Positions 1 to 53,793 of a stretch of 64,000 bases of DNA are shown here, piece after piece. A program made the position numbers and the translations under genes. Positions within the stretch are counted from its first letter, which is position 1; every line of letters begins with the position of its first letter. The notes under the pieces were generated by a model. That model saw only the letters and a list, made by a program, of their open reading frames with translations. It was not told the DNA's origin and did not search any database. This stretch comes from Adineta vaga (Eukaryota; Animalia; Rotifera), in the NCBI GenBank assembly GCA_021613535.1, contig CP075492.1:9424001-9488000 (forward strand), given 5' to 3'.

Positions 1-3000
1 ATTGCTATGGATGTACCCTTACGACCTCAAGAAGTTCATGATCTCGTTAATCGTGCTGGTCGTTTAATTACATCTTATGTCCAAGAATTTCTTCCTGATG
101 ATACTCAACAAACATCATTAACACCATCGACAGTCAACGTTGATACTGGAACTATCAATGCAAGTTTAAATGATACAATAGAAGAACCCAATATGTCAGT
201 TCCATTGGAACGAACAACAACAAAGAAACGTCTAGGTGCACGCCGTAAAGATACGAAAACTCGAAATGTTAATCCACGTCCATTGGAAGCTCAACAAAGT
301 CTCTCATCAGCATCAACAAAACGTCCAATTTTTGAAGCTCATATAACTGCTCATTGTCAAGGCATGACATTTTCTACGACACTTCTTTCAACATTAAAAG
401 CTCAATATAAAATTGGTGTTGTCGAAGGTGTTGCCTATATTGGTGCTACAAAATCACGTTTTACTGCTATTATTCATGAGCATGCTCTTCATTTTCTCAA
501 TAATAATAATAATGATCATCAACAACCTCCAACAGTTAGTTCAGATAATCATGTACGAATTGATTTTCCCGAAATACGTTGTTATGGAAATTATGCATTG
601 CAAGAAGAACCAACAAATAAGATTAAGGGTCATTTAAATCTTCGAACGAAAATTGATTTACTTAAATTAACAATAACAGCAGATTTTCTTGCACAATTAG
701 TTTTCGTTTCCAAAGTTATTATACATGAAATGAATGAAATCTTAGCGAAAGTTTCTGGTTTTGATCAATTTCGTTTTGGTTCAACTAAACATGGACGTTT
801 ATCGTCATCATCAACAATACCAATCATGCGCATTGGTTCAACTGATATCGAAGATGAAGAAGAAGATGATGACGATGATGATGATGATGATGATGAACCA
901 GAAAAAGATCAACAAGCAACATCTGCAACACCATTTACATATAAAATTGACATATCAATGAAAGGTTTTGAAGTTATGGGTCAAACACCATCGAATACAA
1001 TTGTTAAATTCGAAAATGGTGATGATAAAGTACCAATCTTTATTAAGCTAACAAATTATGATGAAAAAAATCCTCTTCTACTCTATAATAAACCATTGAT
1101 CAATGCGTTATTATACATTAAACTCAGTCTAGGACAACTTTTACATACAGGTGGTTTTCAAGATGCTGCTTATTTTAAAACGAAAGTCTTATTAAGAAAT
1201 TCATTTCAAGTAAGTTTCTTTTTTTCTATATCAAACTGATATTTTTGAAAAGATTCAAAATCTATATCGATCTTTCATTCTAGTTCGATGATCCAGAAAA
1301 AGAAGCCTATTTCATTCGTTTAACAAAACCAAGTTTTTATTGGCAACCTGGTGCCATTGATAAAGGTGATTTTAGTTCATATTAACACTTCATCCTAACC
1401 ATTATACTTGTCTGTTTTCTTATCGATTTAGGTATTCTCTTCTGGTTGAATTATAAGAATACTTATGAACATTGGAATGAACAACGTGGTGCATTTACCA
1501 CTACAACAAGTGATTCAACACGTTTACGTTCCATTGTTAATGTTCCAACATCGCCAACAACAAATAAAGAACTAAATCTTATGTTTCAATTACATATCGT
1601 TGATTTAGGTATTGCAATTCCACTTCAACAATATGATCCTCCAACAAAATTAACTACAACAGATAATCCAATGACACCAGGAATTATTACACAACAATCT
1701 GTAGCAACATTGGATGAAAGTAGTGATTTTCTCGTATTTACACTTGATGAAACAACAATATCAGCATGTTCATGTGGTGCTATTATCAGTTCAGGTTCAT
1801 TTGAAGGTTTTTGTTTTCGTTTCGCTGAAAACTTTCAACAAACAAATAACAATTGGAAACCAGAACGTTCATCATCATCATCATCAAATATCATTCTTAA
1901 TGCATGTTGTGTACCAAGTGGACAGTATTTGATGCATTCGCGTGCGAGACATATTTTAAATTCAAATAGTCCTAAATGGTATCTCAATGTACAATGGGAT
2001 ATGAAAGGTATCGATATAAATCTTGATTCAATTATTGGCAAACGTTTTTCTCAATTAATACGTACAATAACATCAACGCAATTAATTGAACCAATGGATC
2101 ATTCGAATAACGAGACGAATTCATCATCGAATTCGAATTTATTAAATACTCAATCGGGTAGTACGAAAAATATTCAAGAAAATATTGATGAAAGTGAAGA
2201 TGATGAAAGAATTAAACGATTAGAATATGAACATTTGATCTTAGGACAAAAGATTGAAACATTAAAGTAAGATTAATTGAAGGTGACAATGAAATGAAAG
2301 GAAGAGATATGTTATTTTACTATATTATAGACGATCTCAAACACCGTATGAAATATTAAAACCAGAATTGGCAAGATATGAATGGCTCGAAAAAGAATTA
2401 TTACATACAGTGAAATCAGAGATTCAACAAATTATGAAAAAACAATCGAATAAGGTATGAATAGGATTGTTTAAGATGTATTTATTAACTAATCTTGAAT
2501 GATCATTGAAAGAATTTCAGTACTATAGAGTAGAGATTTCTAAGATTCAAATGAATATGTGCTATTAAAAGGTTGTAAGTTCATGATCTTTTATACATCT
2601 ATATCTGAATGAGAAGGATCTTTCAAAATAAACACAAATAAATTTTATAGCCATCACCACAGCAACAACAAATCTTTACTTTTCAACAACAAAATGAATT
2701 ATTTCGACGATCAAATATACCTATGGTTCGAATCTCTATTTTCTATTGAATGTTGTGTTTCAATATGTCTTTACGCATGTCTTGTCATAATTATTCATTG
2801 TTTTTCAATATTCCGAGTCAACACATATATATATACATATATAATTGTTGTCATTGTATTGCTTAATGTCTATTTTTGTGATAACATTTGTCTATAAAAA
2901 CAATTAATGACTTCCTTTACTTTGTATTTAGTCGGGACATAATCGTGATCGAAATCGTACTGATTCACCAAGTCATCGACGAACACAATCGCAAGATGTT

Positions 3001-6000
3001 AATGCTAATTCCTATCATCAACAGTAAGTTTGTCTTTGAATTTGTTTATTTTTCTTAAACCAAGAGAAAAAGAAGAACAAGAAAAGATTTATTGTGTACC
3101 TACTAATAGAATACGACGGTATTCACTGAAACATACAGGCACATGTGCATTATCATCATCATCAGGCTTACATCGTCGACGAATGTAAAATTCAACTGAC
3201 TGCTTACACTATTTTCTTCTAACATGCATATATATATACTTTGCTAAATAATTGCATTCGATTTTAACACAAGGGAAAAGAATCAATCTTACATAGAAGA
3301 ATAATGTTACAATGTTTGTTCGTTTATTATTTCATCTTGTTTCTTCTTTTTAGTTCGGATATAATGGTACCTCAACCAGTCATACGTGAAGATGAACTAG
3401 AGAGTGACACACCACGTGCATCAAATTTTAATATTCGGTAAATATAATCAATAACTCGCTAGATGAGCATCTTTCATAAACTTGAAAATTTTCTGTGTAA
3501 CATTCGATTATTTAGTTCTCCTGCTCAAGATCCATCAGTATTTGATGATCATCATTCTATCACTACAAACACACCCAATGAAATTACATCTGCACCGGCT
3601 GTTGATTTAGAATTAAATGTTCAAATTCAAATTGCGAGTGGTTCATGTAATCTATATACACGTCGTGATTTAATATCTCATTCACCATTGACAACAACAA
3701 ATTCAAGTAAACAACAGCAACAACAATTACAAGCAAATATTGGTTCAAGTGTATATATAAATAAAATTGAATATCAAATCTCACAATTTTTCTTGCCGGG
3801 TGTTGATGTTGATGCACATTATAATTCTAAACATAATAATACAACAAATAGTTCATTAAATAAACGTGGTAGCTTCTATTGTAAAGCTATGATACAATCT
3901 CCAACAACACAAATAACAATTCATCCATTATTATTAGATTTTCTTGAGCAAGCACTTGAACATATAACTTTACCAAGTGAACAAGAACGACAAACAAATT
4001 TACAACATGAACAAATGCAAAATATCGATGATGAAAATTCTGAAAATGATCATTTGAAAACGATGTAAGTTGATTGTTGATTAAATTGAAAGAAAAAACA
4101 AGAACTTCGATTAATCGACATTATTATTCTAGGTTTCTCATCGAAGATCAATCATCAACAGCATCATTTCCTATCGATGTCGTCGTTAGTCTTTTCATTC
4201 AACCATCTGTACTTCTCTTTACATGTTTACCAACTCATCCAATGGAATGTGAACTTCGTTTGCCTACAGTTGATGTTGTCTTTTCTTCAAAACGTGCTCT
4301 ACTAGACAATGTTCCATCATCAACAAGCGACAATGAATCTGAACAAATTATTGAGAATTCTCTTGGTGGTTTAAGTTTTTCATTGTATATGAAAGATTTC
4401 AAATTGAATGTATATCATCCATTTTCTGGTGAATCAAAAGTACATTTATTTGAAGATATCCGTTCAGGACAATTACGCACACGTAATGCATTAGCAGTTA
4501 GTGTTCAATCAGTTTCATTTAATATTTCTCGGACACGTTATACTCTTATTGAACGTGATGGTGAATTCTTGAATAATATTCAATTATCAATCATTGGACA
4601 AATTTCAAAAGCACAATTTGAATATGATATCAAACGTTTTTCAGAAATTCTAACATTTCCAAAAATATGGTACAATCGATCATTAGCTCGTCGATTATTC
4701 TTAGGTGACGAAACATTACCAACAACATTACCATCATCACCCTCACCAGTGACAAGGCCAGTAGCTCCAAGTGTGACTAAAACAACAGCAAATAAACAAT
4801 TGCGTAAAGAAGCTCGAGTACTTTTAGCTATTCAATTGAAAGAATTACAAATCTCTATGCGGATGTCAAATGTAATGGGTAAAGTCGAATGGAATACAAC
4901 AGATGTTTCGTCAACGGGTAGTTTAACATTAACAAATGATGGACAACGTGCATTTTTCTTTTCAATTGGTCTTCAAAAATCTGTCTTTCAAGCCGATGAA
5001 GGTATTGTTGGAGGTATAATTCGATTGAAAAATCTCCGAACAACAGGTAAACTCGTTTTCTAAATTAATAAAGAACTGATTTACTAATCATTGAATCTCT
5101 TTCAGGTCTTATTCGACATGGTCTTCACAATCATGCACTTCTTAATGAATCATCTCATGTATTTGATGTTCTTGCAGATGCTATTGAAATTCGTCTTGAT
5201 TATATGAGTTTTCCAACATTAATGGGTCGTATATGTCATATATTACTTCGTTTAAAAGATGATCATCATGGAACTCCAGGTAGTGTTTCCGTGCCTCCTT
5301 CGACACTTGTTCTTGTTAATCTTGAATGGTCTCAATTACATTTGATGATAACACGTTCAACAACTCCGGATATAATTAAAATGGTGTTAAAATTAACGGA
5401 ATTTTTCAATGCACATTTACTCAATTCGAAAAGTTTATTAGCATCAATTCATTATGATTTCCATGATGGTGTTAAACGAAATAATGTCGACAAGAAAACA
5501 ACTAGTGGACAATCAAAATATGATACAAATATTATTAAACGATATATTGGCATGCATGGAGGTGAATTAATGTTACAAGGACATAATTTAACTTTAGTTG
5601 TATTTCATGGTTCAAATTTTAAAGCACGTCAATGGGCATTATTTTCTTTGAATGAACCACAAATTAATTTTGTTACCGATCATGGAGATACAGAAGATAG
5701 TATGTATATCAATCGAATCAGTTATGAATCTATGTTTATTTTGTTTATTTAGTTAATCAAAAATTATTCTTCTATTTGGGCCATCAAGGACAAACAATGC
5801 CAAGATCACGTACAAATATGGCTTCAATATCAAAAGTAACTCGAAATAGCAATGAAGCACCTTCTAATTTAACGATTAATGAATGGTTTAATTATGCAAG
5901 TTCGACTATTTCTGCTGTTGGTATGTATGACTGACTCTATCGCTATATTAGGTTTTACGAAATTCTTTTTCTTCTAGGTTTACGTGATTTTCCAAGTATG

Positions 6001-6728
6001 GATGATGTACCAAACCCAATATTATCAACAAAATTACGTTCGAAACAATATGAACAAAATGCTGAATCAATCTTTATTCTTCCTGGTCTTGAATTACGTT
6101 TTCAAACACGACAATTATCAGGTAATTAATTTCACATTGAAATAAACGAAATCTCAATTTTGTTTTGTTTTTCTTCTCATAGGACAAGTTCATTGTAGTT
6201 TTGAAACTGAATTCTATGAACATATTATGTTCTCGTTCAATGCTGAACATTTCTATTTCTTACATGATCTTATTTCATCTTACATGAAAGAAAAAGAAAA
6301 AGGTAAGAAGAAAAATAAGAGTTGCAATCATGCATTTTTCTTTATTCTCATTTTGATTAGTAACATCACATGATAAACTTCGACAACGAACACCACCGTC
6401 TGCAACACCTTCACATTCCATTGATAATCAAGCATTAACATCATTAGATGAAGTTCGAAGTGATGATATGCGTCATTTCCATTGTCCAGATGCAAAATGG
6501 AAATTACAACCAACAATCAAACTACTTACTGCATATGGCAATGAAGTTGAACCATTTGGTGCTGATTATATTCTACAAAAATTAGGTTTTCGTCATGCAC
6601 GTTTAACAATACCTAAATGGCTTCAACGTGGTATTATGGATCCATGTGAACAATCCATGACAGTCGTACAATTATTTCTTATCTTTCTATTACCCGAACG
6701 TTTCAAAGAGATGTGTATGCGACATTGA
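1..6728 (+). CDS. BLTP1: Bridge-like lipid transfer protein 1 (KIAA1109/Tweek/LPD-3), C-terminal part, multi-exon, 5' end outside window
   Basis: ORFs 7-1239, 1446-2270, 3463-4068, 4074-5063, 5204-5752 and 6468-6728 are joined by short GT-AG introns. Recognisable segments: NACCVPSGQY, LNVQWDMKGIDINLD..IGKR, ILTFPKIWYNRSLARRLFLGD, MSNVMG, and the C-terminal WKLQPTIKLL...DYILQKLGFRHARLTIPKWLQRGIMDP. Confidence 0.9.
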
Positions 6729-6868
6729 TGAAACTTTCAAATAGACAAACAGTTCATAATCCAGCTCAACAATGCATTTGTTTTTCTTTCCTTGTATACT
6801 TTCTAGTCGTTTGTTTGCAACTATGTATAAAAAGAAACACTCAAAATAGACTTCACATATGTGCTGTT

Positions 6869-43293: not shown

Positions 43294-45140
43294 TCACGAA
43301 AAACTATTTCGTTCCAAAGGTAATCGACGTACTGAATAATAATATGATGTTTGATCGATTGACAAGGCTTTCGAATGATTTTTGGATGCAATAAATATAT
43401 ACATATTATCTTCTTTTCTCTTATGAGAGAAATAGTTTAATTGACATTTTAAAATTGAAATAAATGCACGACGAAAACGAACATTAAATGCTGTATAAAT
43501 AAGCTAAAATAGGAAGAAAAAGAAAAGCGATGAGATAATGAAGAATAAGAGGAGTTTCTCTTACGGGATTTATATTCGATGAGATATAGCCAAACCAGCT
43601 GGTTAGATTTAATAATGATGGTTGAACGTTACACGATGGACAAACAGCAGCGAGAATATTTAGAATTGAAAATGGAAGCCAAGCCACAAGAAAAACAAAG
43701 CAAACAATACCAAGAACATTCATAGCTCGACGTTCACTCGTTGTTTCTGTACCACTTTTTAATGCATGAACTGCTTTACGAACCAACGTATTGTGTAGAA
43801 GTGAACGTTGTTGAACATGAAGTGCCGGTGTAGGAGGTCGACTTCTAGAGAAAACAAAAAGAATTCGATTTCGATCGAATGAAAGAACTTACGGCCATTC
43901 AATTTGATTCTGTCTCTCATCTGTGTCTAGTAATGTTTGAGAACGAGGTGTTGACGGCGTGGGAATTGATGACGAACTACGCAATTCCCTTAAGGATGTG
44001 CTTTTGGATTGTTGAGATGGTGAACGAACTTTTGAACATGATCGATGACGTCGTAAACGATCTGATGATTTTGAAATCATCATTAAATCTTGATCAGGAT
44101 CAGAATAACATTTTGCTGCTTCTTGTTGAAGACGTCTTATTGTTAACGAATATGTTACTAACATAAGTATACATGGAACACAAAAACATGCAATTGATCC
44201 ATAGATTTTAAATTGACGATTACTTAAAACACAAGTTTGTTTGTTTTCATTATGAATAACTAAGATATTTCGAGTATCAAGAAAACCAAGAATTAATATC
44301 GTACATGATATACCGATCGAAAATGTCCAAATTGATAGAATTGTTAAAAATGTTTTACATTTACTTCGTTCTCGACTACGAAATGGTCGAGATATACGAA
44401 GAAAACGATCGATAGACAGAATTGTTAAATGCCAGATAGATGTTGTACATAATAGAACATCGAGAAAAACGTAAAGATTACACAAAACGATGGGTAATTT
44501 CCATGAACCTACGTAGAAATCACTTTCTCTTGTAATTATATTATTAAAATAGTTAATGATGACTATAATGGACTATAATTACTTATTTATTTGAAAGAAA
44601 TTCTTTGTGACAGACATTTCTAGAAGGCAAAATTGTTTTTTCAATGTCCTCATATTTTTAATGTCATCTATCAATTGTATTCGTTTGTCATAACTCGACT
44701 TAATGTAACAGACATTAAAAACTCAACTCACTCATATAATTAACCTAACATCTAAAGAGAGAATTTAAAATAACTTCTTTTCATAGCAGAAGAAACACAG
44801 ACGTCTAGAGATTTCTCAACAAACTATTGCACAGTACGTGCCTGAAGAAAGTTTGAAATAAGAATTATCTTTAAATAATATTGTTGCTTAATATACCTTG
44901 AAAATCTTTGATAATTGAAAGTGGTAAAACAATAACACTAACAAGACAATCAGCAATAGCCAATGAAAACAGAAACCAATTGGTAACAGTTTGTAAACGT
45001 TTATCCAGTGAAATCGCTGCACAGACTAATAAATTACCTAGTGTACCAAAAATAGCTAAGATTGATAAACTTAATACAGGCCAATTTAAATGCGATGTAG
45101 TACTCGTGTTTGTGCCATTTGATGTTGATATAAGCGACAT
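43294..45140 (-). CDS. Class A aminergic GPCR, 5-HT2-like serotonin receptor, 4 coding exons
   Basis: GNLLVCAAISLDKRLQTVTNWFLFSLAIAD, LDVLLCTTSIWHLTILSIDRF (Asp3.32), YGSIACFCVP, ERRAMNVLGIV...AWLPF and NP/LIYTAFN. Confidence 0.88.
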
Positions 45141-46229
45141 ATTTTCAAAATAAATGATCTGTAGGGTTCAAAAAAACTATATGTTGCATAAAACTTTTGA
45201 CTCTAATTGAGGAAACGAAGTCGTTCAAAATGTAATGAACTGAAATGAAGAACAGAACTAAATAAATCTCATAGAATAAGAATTAGCGTTGAAACAACGT
45301 TTTCTTTTTCTTTAGAAACGTCATGGTCTCTATTTGCTTGTCTGCTCTGTCTTTTCTATTTCATGATTATACAAGGATTAATAAAAAGGACGAAGAGAGA
45401 GAAAAAAAACGGTTCTAATCTTGACATAGCTACCATTATCATTTTCGACGACAATAAACACGCAAAGTATTCGCTCGTGCGAAGAAAATGATACCGAATG
45501 AATAGGAATAGAAAAATAGGAAAAGAAAGAAAGATTGACGACAATTAAACATGCTATGAGATGAGATCTCTTGATTTCGATGACTTGAGAGATAGGTATC
45601 ACACTTAGTTTCATCTCAATATCATTAATATGCTTGTCATTTGTCGACATTTCTATTCTACAGATGATTGAAGAGTGCATTCTATTCTATTGATGAAACA
45701 AAAGAAGAAGAAAAAGTTGAATGGTCATCATTGTAAACAAAAGAAATTCTGTCTGCAGGCTAAAGAAGATTTTCTCTAACGTTTGTTTTCAATCATGAAC
45801 TCAAAATATTCGCCTTTTAAACAATATAATGAACATACAACTATTTGTTATTCTTTGAATGAAATGGAGCATATATGGTTTGTTTCCTCAAATAAAAATC
45901 AATCATATTCATCGACATAGAAATCAAGTTTTCAATGGTATACTAATTACATGGATGAAAGTTTTCATTGAACAGACTGTTCATATGTGTTTATTAATAA
46001 AAAAAAAAGGTAGATTAAAACCTTCTTTTCTTCTTGGTCATATGTAGCTATAAATATACTGTAAGATTGACATCTGTCATATAATCAATGAAAGATTATC
46101 TACGTTCGCTTTTCAATCCTACGATGTTCATTTTTATTAATATATTTTTCATAACAAAAATAGAAAAACACGCACACATACAAGTACAGTTTATGTATCT
46201 GATCTTTTTCCAAATTTCATGTAGATAAA

Positions 46230-49200
46230 TTAAGAAATCGAAATATTCGATAGATCGTCATGAGGTTGAGTATATTCAAATATCAGTAAGTTTCGTTCTG
46301 TCATTGATTTACCAGTTATTAAATATTCCTGTCGTTTATTAGACTCATTGCAAATTGAATGTACATATAGAGATTTTATTTTCTCCATTGTAAATGTAAA
46401 TTCATTGATGATATCTTTACGATGAATATTCCATGTACGAATACGTTGACCATCAGTATCAATCGAAAGAAAATGTCGTTGATCAAGCCAATTAATTGAG
46501 TAGATCTACAAAGAATAAATCGATAAAGAAATTAAGCTATGTCAACATGTCAGTAAGATCGAACTCTTCTCAATGAGAACATTTATTTTGATTTGCAATC
46601 AAGTGAAGAAGAAAATATTACAAAACTGCGCTAATTCTTTGATAATCTACTCTAAACAGGAATATTGTCGAGGATTTTATTTCTCAGTGTATCATGCTCT
46701 AACGGTAGTTAGTGCATAAGAAAGTAGGTTTGAAGAAAAATACTGTAAGTCAGCGTTTCTTTGTGATAAGGTGAAGTTCATGTTATTGTTTAGACATGCG
46801 TAATAGTATAATCCATGTAGGTGTGACATGAAAGATATCACGATCAAACAAATATGTCAATGATGTTAATTCAATATTTGTTCTGTTCGGTACTTTTCCG
46901 GATGAAGTTCAAAAGAATGTACTTCATTTGATTTATTTTAATGATGGATGACACACACCAGATAATACTACAAATTTTCTATCTATTTTCACTTGAAAAG
47001 AATGTCCTATTTGATAAAACCTAGTGAGTGTTTATGTTATTCAGTATAGTTGAATAATTCATCAAATATTAAAATAGCAATGCACGCAATGGTTAAAAGT
47101 CATAGTACTTGCTTTCCATAATTAATTAGAAATAGAGAAATGCAATATTATCACAATTTCGAGATATCCTTTTCCGTTGATAATATTACTCATGGAGTAT
47201 ATCGTATTCGAATGAACTACTTACTAAAGGATCAGAAATTGTCGTTATCAATGATATTTGTCCCATGACAAGTGTAACATCCCATATATGTATTAGACCA
47301 TGTTCAACATGTATCAATAAACGATTATTATTCATTTGACAATTTTGTACTTGTTGAATTTTCTTCTCTGTATTTAAATGTTGAAAATCATAATTAAAAA
47401 TGATTTCTCCATCATTTAATTTCCAAATAATGATTTGATTTGTATGTAAAATAGTTAACATTTGTTCATCATCATCATTATTATTTGAATCATTTATTGG
47501 AAATGTATAATTTGGATCACATTCAAATCTTGTTAAAATCATCGTACAATTACTTGTTGATCCAATCTTTTGTTCTTGATTAATCATTGTTAATGCATCT
47601 AATTTAAACACAACGAAACATGTATAAGAACTTGAATGTTCCGTACAAACAACTAAGACATAAGATTCATTTTTTGTCAATATAATGCGTTGAATTTCAT
47701 CACCAATGGGTGTATCTGGATCAGATTTTAATTCACGTGCAAGACTACATGAATCAATTTCAAGTAAACCAAGTGATATACCACGACCATATTTCTGTTT
47801 ACCAGCCATGTAAAGTATTGATAAATGTCGTGAAGTTGAAGCTCTAGTACATTTAATCGGATGTGGACTGGTACGAATTGTATAAGTATCTGTGGACCAG
47901 ATTTTCACAGCATATGGATTGACATTTGGTGTTACTTCATAGAATAAACCGATAAGATATTGACCATCCGAAGAGAAAAGAATATCATAACAGGCACCAA
48001 CGGATGTTACAGGTAATTGAGAATGAAAACTTCCAGTCTAAATAAACAAAGAATTTCAAGAGATGTATGTATTTCATATTGAAATTGACTTACAAGTGCA
48101 TGTGCTAATTGAATACGATTTTCATTTGCTGTTGCTAACAGAATTGGTTCTTGGTTTCTTTTATGACATGGTTGTAATGCATAACAATCAACAAGATTTT
48201 TCACATAAAGAAATAAAATTTTTGTTTGAGTTAAAATTGAATTATTATTCTTTAGAATCGATCGTCGTTTGGTTGAAGAACGTTTTTGAGAGATATCTTG
48301 TTCCATATCTAAATTAGCTGCTAAATCACATGAATACACTGCCGAATACGTTTGTGAACTAGTATGATCGAAATCTTTTTTCAATGAACGTAACGTTCCT
48401 GTACTAGGTAAATGTGACTGTGAATGTGTTAGATGTGGTAATGGTAATGGTAGATCACTATCTGATGATATAAGACGATTGACTTGATGATACATCGATG
48501 TTGATGATGATTCCGGTTGAGAAAGACTTGTGTGAATACAGCAATGTTCATTTAGAACACAATCAGAATTTCGATAAGGTAAGGTAGAATTTTCTTTTAC
48601 TGATGATATTAAATGATGACTATCAACATCATTAGTTGATAAACGAAATGCAACTGGTTTTGTTTCAGTTGTCGATAAATAACGTAATAATCTAGGCATT
48701 GTTTTTTTCGAATCATGCTCATCAGATGATGATGTTGATGAACGTTTATTTTGTTGTTGTTGTTGTTGTAAATGGGAATAAGTTTTACCATTTGATTCAC
48801 TATAAGTATATGAAAGATTTTTTCGTCGTGTATGACGATTTGTACAATGTAAACGAATGAAGATAAAGATTAAGAATAGTAGAAAACAACTAGCAATGAT
48901 TGAACCAATTAATAATCCTCGAACACCAAAACGTGTGATTTGATTGGAAAACCATTGTGTCAATGGTCCTTGTGGTGGAACTGGAATTGGTATCATGATA
49001 TTCTTTTTCGTTATCTGTTCTGTATGATATAAATAATCATCAATTAGAGTTGTTGTTATTGATGAAGTTTTCAAAGAAGTTCTCAATGTATCATTCATTG
49101 CATCAGAAAGTATCGTAGTAGAGGATGGAGTAAAGGTAGAAACTGAAGACGCATCAGTTAAATCGAATTGTGTAATGTATGGATTAGAATAAACTTCTTC

Positions 49201-52200
49201 AACATCACCTGATCGAATTAATGTATGATTAAAACTATCAAAAATTGATTGACGATTGAAAGATAAACCTACGAGAGAAAACATTTTCGTTATTTATCAA
49301 AATATTTGTATCATTTTTCACTAACCAGCAACAATACCATTCCATTGTAATGTATTCTTTAAACTTCCAATTTGTAATCGTCGTGGTGCAAGTAAAGATC
49401 GTTGATCGAATGAATACATATGTTCTAAACAGCCAAAGAATAAAATTTAATCCTCTATTTCTATGCGTTTTTCACTCACTATTTCCTCCAGTTAGTTTCG
49501 TTTTTACTCCATCAATATATAATTCAATTACAGTGACATTTCGAATGATTTTAATCACGTGATACATTCCATCTGTTACATGAGCAACAGTTGTATATAT
49601 ATCCGGTTGTTTACCACCAAAATTTAATTTTATGTATGATCGTCCACGCACCTAACATATACACATCTGAGTTCGTATTATCAAATGAAAATCTACATAC
49701 AATTTCATATTCAAGACTATATCCATTCGAATCCGAGTATAAACGAAAGATTTGAGCTGCCATGGATAAAGTCTGAAGACCAAATGTAATTGTGTCATAT
49801 TCAATTTGATGAACGGAATTCATGAGATATTCAAGTGCACCAGCAGAATTATTTTTACCAAAATAAAAACCATTTGGTACTAAATTTGAAGTATTTTCTT
49901 CACATAAAATTGTTTCATAAAGATCATGACTTACATTTATCACATCGTTCGCCTATATAACCTGTTTCAGTACAATCACATTTCGTTCCATCACGTTCAT
50001 TCGATGTACATATACCCGAATGTACACATGTAAAATCATAGCAAAGTTTGTTTAAATCTATTTTATAAAAAAAATACAAAGATTAGCATTCATTTGATGT
50101 TATGAAATATGTTCACTAATCACAAAACACAAATCGGGCAACGGGGAAATCAGATACTACACACAATTGCTTACCATTATTTTCATTCGATGTTTTTACT
50201 GAAGAATCTACTATTACTCAATTTCGATTAAAAAACAAAAGTAACGAAAAATAGAAAAATACTCTACCTGAACAAACATTCATTGTAACACTTCCATAAA
50301 GTGATAGAGCAGTTTGATAATCAAGCAATCGACCATCGACAATAAAACTTGATAGACAACCTTGAAATCCATAAGAATTCAAACCTGAACCTGTTAAATT
50401 GATATTATTATTATAAGGTATTCCACCAACATAGAGAACAGGTTGAAGTGAAACAGCATTTCTCATACCATTCGCCGATAAAGTCGAACGATTGACGCGA
50501 TTATCAACAATTAAATCAATTCTATAAGAAAAATATCAGTGTCTAAATATAATTCACAAATCTTTGTTTTTCTTACTTGTCAGTTCCAATTCTTGTTACT
50601 CGTACTTCATGCCATTTTCCATCAGATAATTTCGTTGATTCATCACTAATAATTTGTCGTTTACCAAATCCAAAATCAATAAACAAGACTAAGATTCCTG
50701 CACGTAATCCAATAGCAAAATATTCATTCAAGCCTTGTGCATAACGATAAAGAATAATTCCATCTGGTACATAGGAACGAAATAAGAAATAGATATCCAA
50801 TTTGCCATGATTTTTATTCTGACTTTCACGTTCCGAAAAAGCAATATGTGATGTTTGTGTATCAATGGTAACTAAATTAAAAAATGCAATACGATAACCG
50901 ACCACAATATGTTGACTATGATAATTAAATGATGATTGAATTTGTTCTTTTCGTGTTGTTAAACTTGAAAATAAATTTTCATCATTAAAAGTCAAATCAC
51001 TCATATAACCAATAAATGGTTGAAATATATCCGTATTAAACCGACGTGTATCTCCAACTAACAATGCATTGACATTCCAACTTGATACAACATAACTAGG
51101 AATTCGTGCTGAAAAAGAAAACAACAACAACAACAATAACAACAACATAAAAAAGAATGAATCAGAAAATTTACATGTTCGTCTATCATTATCAACAATG
51201 ATGGTATATGTTCCATCATAATCAATATCAAATTGTAGCCAATGCCAATTATCATTATTTACATTTTTACCACATTGACTAATCTATAAAACAAAGAGAG
51301 TACTTCAGAAACTGCCGTCGAAGTTCAGTACAAAGAAAATGTCAGAAGAAAGAATCCCTACGTATTTAGATATATAATTCTTGATCTACAATTTAAATAG
51401 AACGTCAATATATACTGTCGATAGTTTTCAAAAGACAGGAAACTAATTTTTGAGAAATTATATTTTCTCTTTAGGGGCGGACAAGACAGAAAACATAGTT
51501 TTATAAATGTCTCTTCCAATTGACAATGATTGATAGGTTTCTGTTATTTTCATGATAATTTTCGATTTGAAACGAAGAAGAATCATTCTTCCGTAGAAAT
51601 ATTCCACTTTTATTTTCTCATCTAGATTACATAATACAATCATAAACGATCGGGTTTTTTTTTCTTCTGCCAATTGCATCCGGATATCAAATCAATTTTG
51701 TTTTACTTTATTTTCCGGCTATCAATATAGACTGTATACTAAATAATTAAATATCTTTTCCTTTTTACACACGCTTATTTAAACAATAATATTCTCAATT
51801 TAGTCTAAGATGTATTTCGACTAACATCGATCGCTAGACTAATAATGACCTTGAAGAACGGAAATAAGAAAACACTTCATTTCTTCTTTTTCTTTTTGTA
51901 TACATACGCATCCTTACAAACTACGAATCATTCTTTATTCAATATTACATAGATTATTAATCAAAAGAAGAAAAAAATCACATTGAATTTCGAGAAAAAA
52001 AATGTATAATTAATCTTTTAGTAAAGCTTCGATTAACTATTCTGATGAAATGAGAATGGATGGGTACATCATTTCTTTCGCATTACATAAGTCAAAACAT
52101 TTGCGAAGAAGAGAAGTAACATGTTGATGACTGACAAAGTTTATATTAAAGATTACTTTACTTACATTGACAGTTGATAATTCATTTCTAGTATTGAGTT

Positions 52201-53793
52201 GAAGAATAGTTATTTCGATTTGTCCATTTGTATGTTCAATAATAATAAATGGAATAATTGATGAATGAGATTTACGATGTGTTAAAGAAAGTAAAACACC
52301 ATTCGATATTCTACCTAATGTACGAAAACGTACGGATAAACGAAGTGGATAATCGAGTGATTCTCGATGACGATAATCGATGAATGCTGAAGAATTAAAT
52401 GTAATTATGATTGATGAGGTTGATCCTAATCATAAACAAAAAAGAAAGGAAAAAGAAAACAGTTGTTTCATCTTTTCTTTTCAGTTCATCAGTCAGGGTT
52501 AGGAAAATACGGGCACCATGATTAACATCTATCATGCCTCATCGGATATTTCTATCATCAAGTATGTTTATACAATATAAAAGAGATAACTATTAAGAAC
52601 AATTATTTTCCTATGCTTCACAGAATTCAAGAAAAGTATTCGATTATATTAAATCATCAACTATAGACAGATGCGTATCTACCTGGTCGATATTGATCTG
52701 GTAAAGTATTACGTTTGACAAGTTCTTTTCCTAAGTAACAATGTTTTGTTGACATATTTGTTTTGTTTCCTGTTACTTCATTCGATAATAATGAGAAGAG
52801 AACTTGTTTCTTATATTGATTATGATTAATTAAAAGTTTGAAGTTGGATGAAAATGTTAATAATTGTAAACTATGATTATTTCTTTTCAAATGAACAACA
52901 TGATAATGATTATCATTCGTTGTCAGTGTTAGATGACATTGTTCAATTATATAACATCGATTTGATATCGAGATTGTTTGATTAACAGCGGGAATAATAA
53001 TATGAGTAGAAAGTTTTTGACATAACTAGAAGAAAAAAAAAACATTATTTCATTATTTGATAATATAGAGAAGAAAAGAAACTACAGGGGGTTATAGAAA
53101 TGATACAATCATTGCAGATCGATGTTGGTGTTGTTCTCATGATGGTTGAGTGGTTACTTAAGATGTCTTGCTTACTTTCTTTTGTTCATGGTAATTATCG
53201 ATCGTATAACACGTAAATATCAAACCGATGAGGTGATTAACTTTTCTTTATATGTATAAGCTTGAAGAAAATTTCACATTAACTTGAAAATCTCTATTCT
53301 TTCGTCTTACTCAACGAAAACAATCAATTTTTCATTAGAAATTCGTATAAGAATGATTAGTTCGCCTGAAGCAAGCATGAACATAATGATTATTGAAATG
53401 AACTTTTCTTTCTCTTTTTAGTCTTTGAAAAGTATAAGATGGAAACATATCCATATGCTCTTTTGTAAAAGTAAAATGTAATTATGTTAAATTATACATA
53501 TTCATATTTAATGCACAGACACTACTCGAACATTACTTTAGGTATCATCTGTTGATCAATAAGAAATAATGTATTCAACAGTCATACAATGACAAATGCT
53601 CACGGACACATGAATGTCTACGCCCTCAAAAAAAAAAGCACCTAGTCAAAAGTAATGATGATGATCATGATTTTAAACTTTTAATTCATAAAAAAAGGAA
53701 ACGAAAATTTACAGTAATATTTACCTGTAGACTTCGATCAATGGAGAAGAATGAAATCAGCACCAATAGATGTAAAATATAATTGTTTTGCAT
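46230..53793 (-). CDS. Neurexin-like type I membrane protein (signal, LamG-LamG-EGF-LamG, Ser/Thr stalk, TM) with a long cytoplasmic tail ending in a WD40-like beta-repeat region
   Basis: Signal exon MQNNYILHLLVLISFFSIDRSLQ (53793). LamG motifs LSVRFRT, FLFRSYVPDGIILY...LSDGKWHEVRVTR, LYVGG...GFQGCL and VTDGMYHVIKIIR; EGF CYDFTCVHSGIC..CDCTETGYIGERC; TM GLLIGSIIASCFLLFLIFIFI. In-frame splices continue into ORF 47186-47908 and a last exon at about 46504-46230. Confidence 0.8.

Follow-up and report, generated by a model that had tools for sequence, protein, structure and literature searches.

A neurexin-like receptor gene of the rotifer Adineta vaga with a predicted intracellular WD40-type propeller, probably a divergent relative of PHRED-1

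Can a neurexin-like adhesion receptor carry a beta-propeller of its own on the cytoplasmic side of the membrane? The question was raised by a gene of the bdelloid rotifer Adineta vaga, whose genome comprises 100.8 Mb in six contigs with a GC content of about 30%. The gene, called the receptor gene below, occupies positions 53793 to 46230 on the minus strand of the window, the 64-kb stretch C3:9424001-9488000 analysed here. An earlier note, made from the sequence alone, had proposed a truncated neurexin-type ectodomain fused to a cytoplasmic propeller and had not recognised the architecture. We consider it likely that the locus is one expressed gene of 14 exons, which encodes a neurexin-like LamG/EGF ectodomain, a transmembrane (TM) helix and an intracellular WD40-type propeller, and which is a divergent bdelloid paralogue of PHRED-1-type receptors.

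Thirteen exons were picked by eye and numbered 1 to 13 (Table 1). Every intron between them was GT-AG, and the phases summed to a single frame of 4404 nt. An in-frame microexon of 33 nt (50207-50175), which was missing from the model of the earlier note, lies between exons 6 and 7 and carries no number. With it, the model comprised 14 exons and 1478 amino acids (aa). The junction behind the TM helix was present as the note had described it. The open reading frame (ORF) 48007-49284 on the minus strand has a GTAAGT donor at 48093 after ...RIQLAHAL, and the acceptor ...TTTAG ends at 48038, which leaves an intron of 56 nt (48093-48038). The frame continues in exon 12 as TGSFHSQLP... and holds the quoted motifs AVKIWSTD, ILTKNESYVLV, QIIIWKLNDG and GLIHIWDV. 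A last intron of 719 nt, with a GTAAGT donor after ...ISDPL, separates this WD-like exon from the final one. Retention of intron 11 would lead to an in-frame stop at 48007-48009.

RNA evidence came from the contigs of four small bulk, whole-animal sequencing runs of the same organism (X1, X2 and X4 among them), which were aligned to 46150-52140; exon 1 lies outside this stretch. The candidate runs held 7-37% of sampled words, and none was catalogued as RNA. Eight joints were reproduced exactly in spliced contigs of RNA-type runs from two studies, and the introns skipped in these contigs were all CT..AC on the plus strand. The joint 48037|48094, which removes intron 11 and which the note had named as a check (roughly 48040-48094), was seen in two runs, X1 (34 letters on the short side) and X4 (70 letters). 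The joint between exons 12 and 13 (46505|47225) and the two joints of the microexon (50057|50175 and 50207|50268) were each found in X1 and X2. Run contigs also contained the joints 49424|49480, 49651|49701 and 49879|49935, as well as the joint of exons 10 and 11 with one synonymous difference, and a contig covered 50707-50951 of exon 5. Because contigs without introns come only from spliced RNA, the receptor gene is transcribed, and splicing links its TM exon to the WD-like exon without a change of frame.

Inserts like the microexon were present in the model of the ohnolog (P0031) and in P0036 of Rotaria sordida, and absent from the models P0037 and P0043. The microexon may thus be alternatively spliced. 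In vertebrate neurexins, the alternatively spliced site SS6 has a place similar to that of this microexon in the linker between LamG and EGF, which we mention as a lead only. At position 48609 in exon 11, a contig in X1 and X2 left the match and went on with an unrelated stretch of 135-168 letters. The position has no AG acceptor, and another contig crossed it unbroken. The break could stem from chimeric assembly, the sequence being of low complexity there, or mark an isoform not yet recognised.

Database and domain searches were run exon by exon or on database proteins. Two homologs were especially useful. P0031, the 'hypothetical protein I4U23_029336 [Adineta vaga]', is encoded by the ohnolog on C6. 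P0025 (1635 aa; UniRef name 'Neurexin') was predicted independently in Didymodactylos carnosus. The ectodomain of the receptor reads signal peptide, Cys-containing N-terminal region, LamG-LamG-(microexon)-EGF-LamG. The leader of exon 1 parallels the signal-like N-terminus of P0031. Exon 2 shared 38% identity with the ohnolog and 61% with the A. steineri ortholog, and a weak Teneurin_ABD hint (E 0.004) was its sole Pfam match. Pfam recognised LamG on exons 4, 5, 6 and 9 and EGF on exon 7, and three LamG regions were found in both P0025 and P0031. For exon 5 alone, the best match in the PDB was neurexin-1-alpha (E 6.8e-31, compared with 3.7e-10 for laminin alpha-1). Neurexin-1-alpha was also the best solved relative of P0025 (E 6e-59). 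Thus, the truncated neurexin-type ectodomain held up, and its LamG-LamG-EGF-LamG order is that of the C-terminal half of alpha-neurexin. The TM segment (48918-48850) was the sole one in the whole model with KD19 above 2 (2.93), and every bdelloid ortholog had a hydrophobic segment at the corresponding place. The basic residues behind the helix indicate a type I topology for this membrane protein of ~1478 aa.

The cytoplasmic part had been estimated at over 600 aa and comprises 614 aa; the protein ends ...NISIS. It is laid out as a low-complexity linker of ~250 aa and a propeller region of ~400 aa, the latter encoded by the end of exon 11 and exons 12 and 13. Pfam gave sub-threshold hints of a beta-propeller on exons 12 and 13, and therefore the fold was tested through homologs with AlphaFold2 (AF2). 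The first model, of P0025:1170-1635 (alignment of 16 rows), had a predicted local distance difference test score (pLDDT) of 62.8 overall and was good over its last 320 residues. All 500 of the 500 Foldseek matches counted for it were propellers, and the top ones were designer proteins titled eight-bladed. The second model, of P0031:1064-1487 (alignment of 26 rows), was confident, with a pLDDT of 82.1, a predicted template modelling score (pTM) of 0.83 and ~30 strands. VIA-align placed it closest to the IFT-A chain 8bbf_A (Z 27.3), and it reached Z 22-26 with ODA16, Rsa4, Sqt1, WDR41, Ika8, Sif2, BamB and Cdc4/Fbw7. In these comparisons, 320-340 residues were aligned over model residues 18-415, and the solved propellers are ones that we take to be eight-bladed. 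The homolog models contain a closed ring of four-stranded antiparallel blades, as expected of the WD40 fold. It seems from these models that the tail forms a WD40-type propeller, as the earlier note had proposed, and a closed and probably eight-bladed one.

The propeller is not confined to the exons behind intron 11. Alignment A2 mapped the tail of exon 11 to residues 1-59 of the P0031 model, exon 12 to 60-335 and exon 13 to 336-422. The last 59 aa of exon 11 contain four confident strands (residues 20-57, block pLDDT 84-93), which is one blade's worth. A propeller that straddles intron 11 is an independent argument against two separate genes. One blade encoded in exon 12, with the motif MAGxQKYGRGIS.G.LD...ELKSD, was nearly invariant across relatives; judged by this conservation, it is probably where a conserved interaction site should first be sought. 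The complete C-termini of relatives share an ER.LL motif, and exon 13 aligns with that region. Just before the first blade, a K-R-R-S-x-x-K motif, which looks like a basophilic kinase site, was present in most orthologs, and the few deviations from it were conservative.

The combination of extracellular LamG and EGF domains, a TM helix and intracellular WD40 repeats is already known, in contrast to what the earlier note supposed. It defines the family of PHRED-1 (pharynx regeneration defective-1) of the flatworm Schmidtea mediterranea (Adler & Sanchez Alvarado 2017, bioRxiv 10.1101/131789). PHRED-1 has 2536 aa, with a signal sequence, six LamG and nine EGF domains outside, a TM helix and an intracellular WD40 part (bioRxiv 10.1101/131789). 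The authors found this combination in lophotrochozoans only (Schistosoma, Lottia, Octopus, Capitella and tapeworms) and reported no rotifer among the homologs; the C-terminal WD40 region, with three recognised repeats, was the most conserved part (bioRxiv 10.1101/131789). The gene is expressed in muscle and its RNA interference (RNAi) leaves muscle fibres disorganised and thickened, while the role of the WD40 part was stated to be unknown (bioRxiv 10.1101/131789). As the same architecture occurs in flatworms, molluscs and annelids (bioRxiv 10.1101/131789), we dropped the notion of a family confined to Syndermata.

The receptor resembles PHRED-1 in its signal sequence, its neurexin-related extracellular LamG/EGF domains, its single TM helix of type I topology, its C-terminal intracellular WD40 part and its occurrence in a spiralian, and in that conservation is strongest in the C-terminal WD40 region. 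That the WD40 part belongs to the same polypeptide follows from the splicing together with the ohnolog model (Z 27). The two proteins differ in size and in repeat number, with ~1478 aa, three LamG and one EGF in the receptor. In addition, the receptor's propeller was missed by the WD40 models of Pfam, and its whole region models as a closed propeller, compared with the three recognised repeats of PHRED-1. Its WD40 sequence signal was weak on its own exons and clear in homologous relatives.

Those relatives were found mainly in rotifers and acanthocephalans. A HMMER search with exon 12 matched only 18 proteins among 1.84 billion representatives. In the long ones, the matched region was C-terminal and contained canonical WD40 repeats visible to Pfam. 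The ectodomains before it varied, with six or nine LamG domains (P0009, P0014), teneurin-type EGF (P0005), or LamG and Fz (P0016 of Seison nebaliae). The Brachionus plicatilis protein 'neurexin-1a-like isoform X9' (P0083) has three LamG domains, a TM helix and WD40 repeats. Relatives of the exon 12-type propeller were also present in the acanthocephalans Pomphorhynchus and Neoechinorhynchus. Long forms of 1800-2440 aa, in which Pfam recognised LamG, teneurin-type EGF and WD40, occur in bdelloids and acanthocephalans. Protein searches of the kind that the earlier note had suggested yielded these rotifer and acanthocephalan relatives and no mollusc, annelid or flatworm PHRED-1 homolog among the matches listed. 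Searches of the ESM Atlas with a canonical-type propeller returned generic WD40, AIP1 and WDR1 clusters only, and topic searches of the literature on rotifer neurexins and on intracellular WD40 receptors found nothing relevant.

In the A. vaga genome, the propeller profile detected just two ohnolog pairs, the receptor type and a canonical type (C3:~8.615 Mb and C6:~7.681 Mb). Exon 12 matched the two canonical loci with E 4e-18 and 1.5e-15, and the relative P0005 with E 7e-19. The canonical locus on C3 (C3:8615092-8620765) has, besides its EGF exons, a signal peptide and a TM helix. On the same strand, 11-17 kb upstream of its EGF-TM-WD40 exons, we observed a LamG exon resembling neurexin LNS1 (C3:8632384-8632821, minus strand), in line with the long LamG+EGF+WD40 gene models found in other bdelloids. 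The long forms (e.g. P0207 of Adineta steineri, P0212 of Neoechinorhynchus agilis, and the A. vaga loci C3:~8.615-8.633 Mb and C6:~7.68 Mb) have a propeller homologous to that of the receptor, with the same blade motif and the same C-terminal ER.LL, and in A. vaga they share a genome with it. They differ from it in a longer ectodomain with an EGF array and in the canonical GH/WD signatures seen by Pfam, whereas the receptor's propeller has lost the GH and WD dipeptides in most blades. A 7099-nt contig from Logan (SRR6291294) contains an uninterrupted ORF of 2061 aa (616-6801) with LamG, teneurin-type EGF and WD40, whose propeller is 55% identical to that of Rotaria. The contig looks like a transcript, so that here the long form appears to be encoded by one mRNA.

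The receptor gene is a fast-diverged paralogue of these rotifer and acanthocephalan LamG/EGF-TM-WD40 receptors, found so far in bdelloids only. Because the relatives share the architecture that defines PHRED-1, the receptor gene most likely belongs to the PHRED-1 family, an assignment made by analogy of domain content. Several points weigh against our interpretation of the locus. No single read or contig runs from the TM helix to the stop codon, the contigs being short and of low depth, so that an internal promoter, or a short isoform that retains intron 11, may exist. The RNA nature of the runs was guessed, though their contigs lack introns and must derive from spliced molecules. Pfam found no significant WD40 model on exons 12 and 13, and the evidence for the fold comes from an ohnolog and a Didymodactylos ortholog, 70% and 55% identical, respectively. 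The link to PHRED-1 consists of the shared architecture and the long rotifer forms, not of an alignment to PHRED-1 itself. The lack of mollusc, annelid and flatworm PHRED-1 homologs among the matches listed belongs here too, although the protein searches were word-prefiltered, length-windowed or started from the most divergent query.

The last two points leave some room for a fusion in rotifers independent of the flatworm, mollusc and annelid PHRED-1, that is, for convergent domain shuffling. Large searches gave no non-syndermatan animal protein above the generic WD40 level among the matches listed, and the PHRED-1 paper lists no rotifer homolog (bioRxiv 10.1101/131789). However, the domain classes and their order are identical to those of PHRED-1, and the long bdelloid forms, with 2330-2440 aa, are close to its length of 2536 aa. 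Rotifers are also spiralians, the clade to which the PHRED-1 family is restricted (bioRxiv 10.1101/131789), and the blank searches are weak evidence owing to their prefilters, length windows or divergent query. Therefore, we regard an independent origin as unlikely.

Is the divergent propeller still a working domain? It could be a decaying relic without binding, in a protein that acts through its ectodomain only. The failure of Pfam on exons 12 and 13 would fit such decay, as would the lack of any WD40 family on P0031 at a cut-off of 1e-5 and the loss of the GH and WD dipeptides. The tree might be taken in the same sense, because the receptor-type clade (support 100/100) sits on a very long stem branch from its canonical relatives (1.74 + 1.5 changes per site). 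The branches inside the clade are short, however. We take this combination to mean a single burst of divergence and constraint thereafter, an interpretation drawn from the tree.

The fusion is conserved in the ohnolog and in orthologs. On C6, exons 2-13 are all collinear with the receptor gene and have the same intron positions. The ohnolog's intron 11 is 55 nt long, GT..AG, and interrupts the same codon position; its sequence is unrelated, although the flanking exons are conserved. Its exon 12 is 70% identical. Comparatively, exon 12 is 55% identical in P0025, which aligns continuously across both junctions (residues 1284 to 1286 and 1555 to 1556). Full-length models of 1409-1487 aa were found in Adineta ricciae, A. 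steineri and four Rotaria species, with the TM helix ~350 aa upstream of the MAGxQKYGRGIS motif and a conserved C-terminus. One ohnolog lineage is modelled in Adineta, Rotaria and Didymodactylos and the other in Adineta and Rotaria. Against decay, both lineages have full-length models, and no frame breaks were seen in the receptor gene or its ohnolog. Between the two A. vaga ohnologs, dN/dS was 0.29 for exon 12, 0.30 for exon 13, 0.14-0.25 for the LamG exons and 0.44 for exon 11, values that are rough because dS (0.7-1.1) is near saturation. These ratios indicate that the gene is kept under purifying selection as two ohnologs. Considering also the confident AF2 fold of the ohnolog and the intact blade motif, a relic seems very improbable.

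Two ortholog models deserve mention as likely gene-model errors. In P0039 (Rotaria sordida, 1070 aa), fatty acyl-CoA reductase domains are joined to the LamG ectodomain. P0037 (Adineta steineri) contains a duplicated 'TANENRIQLSHAL' segment exactly at the junction of exons 11 and 12.

With a divergent WD40-type propeller behind a neurexin-like ectodomain, the receptor is most likely, by analogy, an adhesion receptor, in which the LamG/EGF module would bind an extracellular ligand or one on a neighbouring cell. The built-in propeller would recruit cytoplasmic partners and so replace the short PDZ/4.1-binding tail of true neurexins. By analogy with the RNAi phenotype of PHRED-1, such partners might possibly be cytoskeletal or myofibril-organising. 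That the receptor carries its own scaffold, as the earlier note put it, would then be a reasonable inference. Other membrane proteins, such as the polytopic SCAP and the type II Sec12/PREB, use cytosolic WD40 propellers for protein binding. They resemble the receptor in having a membrane-tethered propeller on the cytosolic side. They differ in topology and lack an adhesion ectodomain, and any sequence relation is at most that of the generic WD40 fold; the Beta-prop_SCAP matches of Pfam on the receptor's relatives were far below the cut-off.

A more specific history can be offered tentatively, and we would not bet on it. A PHRED-1-type receptor might have been duplicated, and in the bdelloid copy the ectodomain might have been shortened to a module like LNS4-LNS5-EGF-LNS6 of neurexin while the propeller surface was rebuilt in one burst with a single blade kept. 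The product would be a neofunctionalised, bdelloid-specific receptor with new cytoplasmic partners, both of whose ohnologs have been retained since the ancient genome duplication.

Another possibility was that the receptor gene is the rotifer orthologue of neurexin, a synaptic organiser with a replaced tail. The best non-rotifer matches of its ectodomain were neurexins, and public names point the same way ('Neurexin' for P0025 in UniRef, 'neurexin-1a-like' for P0083 of Brachionus). The likeness to alpha-neurexin (vertebrate NRXN1-3, Drosophila Nrx-1) consists of the LNS/LamG-EGF-LamG module, the type I topology and the Ser/Thr-rich stalk. However, alpha-neurexin has six LNS and three EGF domains and a PF01034 tail of ~55-100 aa ending in a PDZ ligand. 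The receptor has three LamG domains, one EGF and a 614-aa tail with a propeller, and Pfam did not find PF01034 on exon 11. Moreover, a better candidate exists on another chromosome. The best A. vaga matches to insect neurexin lie at C1:6510242-6514214, with LamG matches over residues 8-1214, and the receptor gene was not among the best matches in that genome search. The candidate locus (C1:6510242-6515100, plus strand; ohnolog C4:6477131-6481827, minus strand) continues with a TM helix and a tail of ~100 aa that ends ...EFYI, is PDZ-ligand-like and resembles that of neurexin. With a canonical alpha-neurexin candidate of the six-LNS type on C1 and C4, the receptor gene is, to judge from these comparisons, a paralogous neurexin-like receptor and not the animal's neurexin; orthology to neurexin is highly improbable.

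Neurexin-like juxtamembrane regions were also observed elsewhere in the genome. At C2:4363302-4363562 (minus strand), a TM helix and tail are 52% identical over 44 aa to the juxtamembrane region of neurexin-1a (PF01034, 28.7 bits); no LamG exon was detected within 9 kb upstream of this tail (C2:4363425). A genome scan with PF01034 gave stronger matches at C2:7283397 and C5:11026836. These had no LamG at E <=1e-3 within ~9-19 kb upstream, and they look syndecan-like.

Finally, the locus could be two adjacent genes wrongly joined, a LamG-TM protein ending at 48007 and a soluble WD-like protein, as the in-frame stop in a retained intron 11 and the lack of a single contig over both parts might suggest, but this reading is largely refuted and has hardly any chance of being right, since the spliced joint 48037|48094 was seen in two runs, the TM exon already encodes the first four strands of the propeller, the ohnolog has the same junction around an intron of unrelated sequence, independent gene models of eight species run through it without a break, and the relatives with canonical WD40 repeats also have them behind the TM helix.

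The receptor gene is therefore not a new kind of system. It is a divergent addition to a known kind of receptor, a spiralian invention described in a single paper (bioRxiv 10.1101/131789). The PHRED-1 family, or something built exactly alike, extends to rotifers and acanthocephalans. In this case, the WD region appears as a complete and probably eight-bladed propeller, with the first blade and the TM helix encoded by one exon, and the blade kept across very divergent members is a candidate functional site. Bdelloids keep a diverged subfamily, a canonical subfamily and a true neurexin, which together offer a natural comparison for the role of the propeller. The finding helps annotation, as public names such as 'Neurexin' and 'uncharacterized' are misleading, and should be of use to those who study PHRED-1.

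Table 1. Features of the receptor gene (window positions; exon numbers follow the by-eye model).
Feature	Position	Strand	Description
Exon 1	53725..53793	-	Start ATG at 53793 and 23-aa hydrophobic, signal-peptide-like leader
Exon 2	52683..53025	-	N-terminal extracellular region with 4 Cys and 4 N-x-S/T sites
Exon 3	52166..52425	-	Start of LamG domain 1; 82% identity to ohnolog; inside the LamG region of orthologs
Exon 4	51175..51283	-	Middle of LamG 1; Pfam Laminin_G_2 E 0.014 (36-aa piece); 76% identity to ohnolog
Exon 5	50577..51108	-	LamG 1 (last part) and LamG 2 (first half); Pfam Laminin_G_2 E 1e-13
Exon 6	50268..50521	-	LamG 2 (second half); Pfam Laminin_G_1 and Laminin_G_2, E ~6e-5
Microexon	50175..50207	-	33 nt in frame (11 aa); linker between LamG 2 and EGF; RNA joints on either side
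Exon 7	49935..50057	-	EGF-like domain, 6 Cys; Pfam EGF E 4.6e-4; RNA joints on either side
Exons 8-10	49879-49701, 49651-49480, 49424-49326	-	LamG domain 3; Pfam Laminin_G_2 E 1.3e-4 (exon 9)
Exon 11	48094..49268	-	End of LamG 3, Ser/Thr-rich stalk, TM helix, 252-aa cytoplasmic linker, first four predicted propeller strands
TM helix	48850..48918	-	23 aa, followed by a basic stretch; KD19 2.93
Intron 11	48038..48093	-	56 nt, GT..AG; joins TM exon to WD-like exon; spliced form in RNA contigs
Exon 12	47225..48037	-	Bulk of the predicted propeller (model residues 60-335), including the blade with MAGxQKYGRGIS...ELKSD
Exon 13	46230..46505	-	Last predicted propeller blades (model residues 336-422) and stop codon; starts IYSINWLDQRHFLSIDTDGQRIRTWNI

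The next gene downstream on the same strand (43889-45140) looks like a rhodopsin-type (amine-like) G protein-coupled receptor with at least two exons (ORFs 44871-45140 and 43889-44485).

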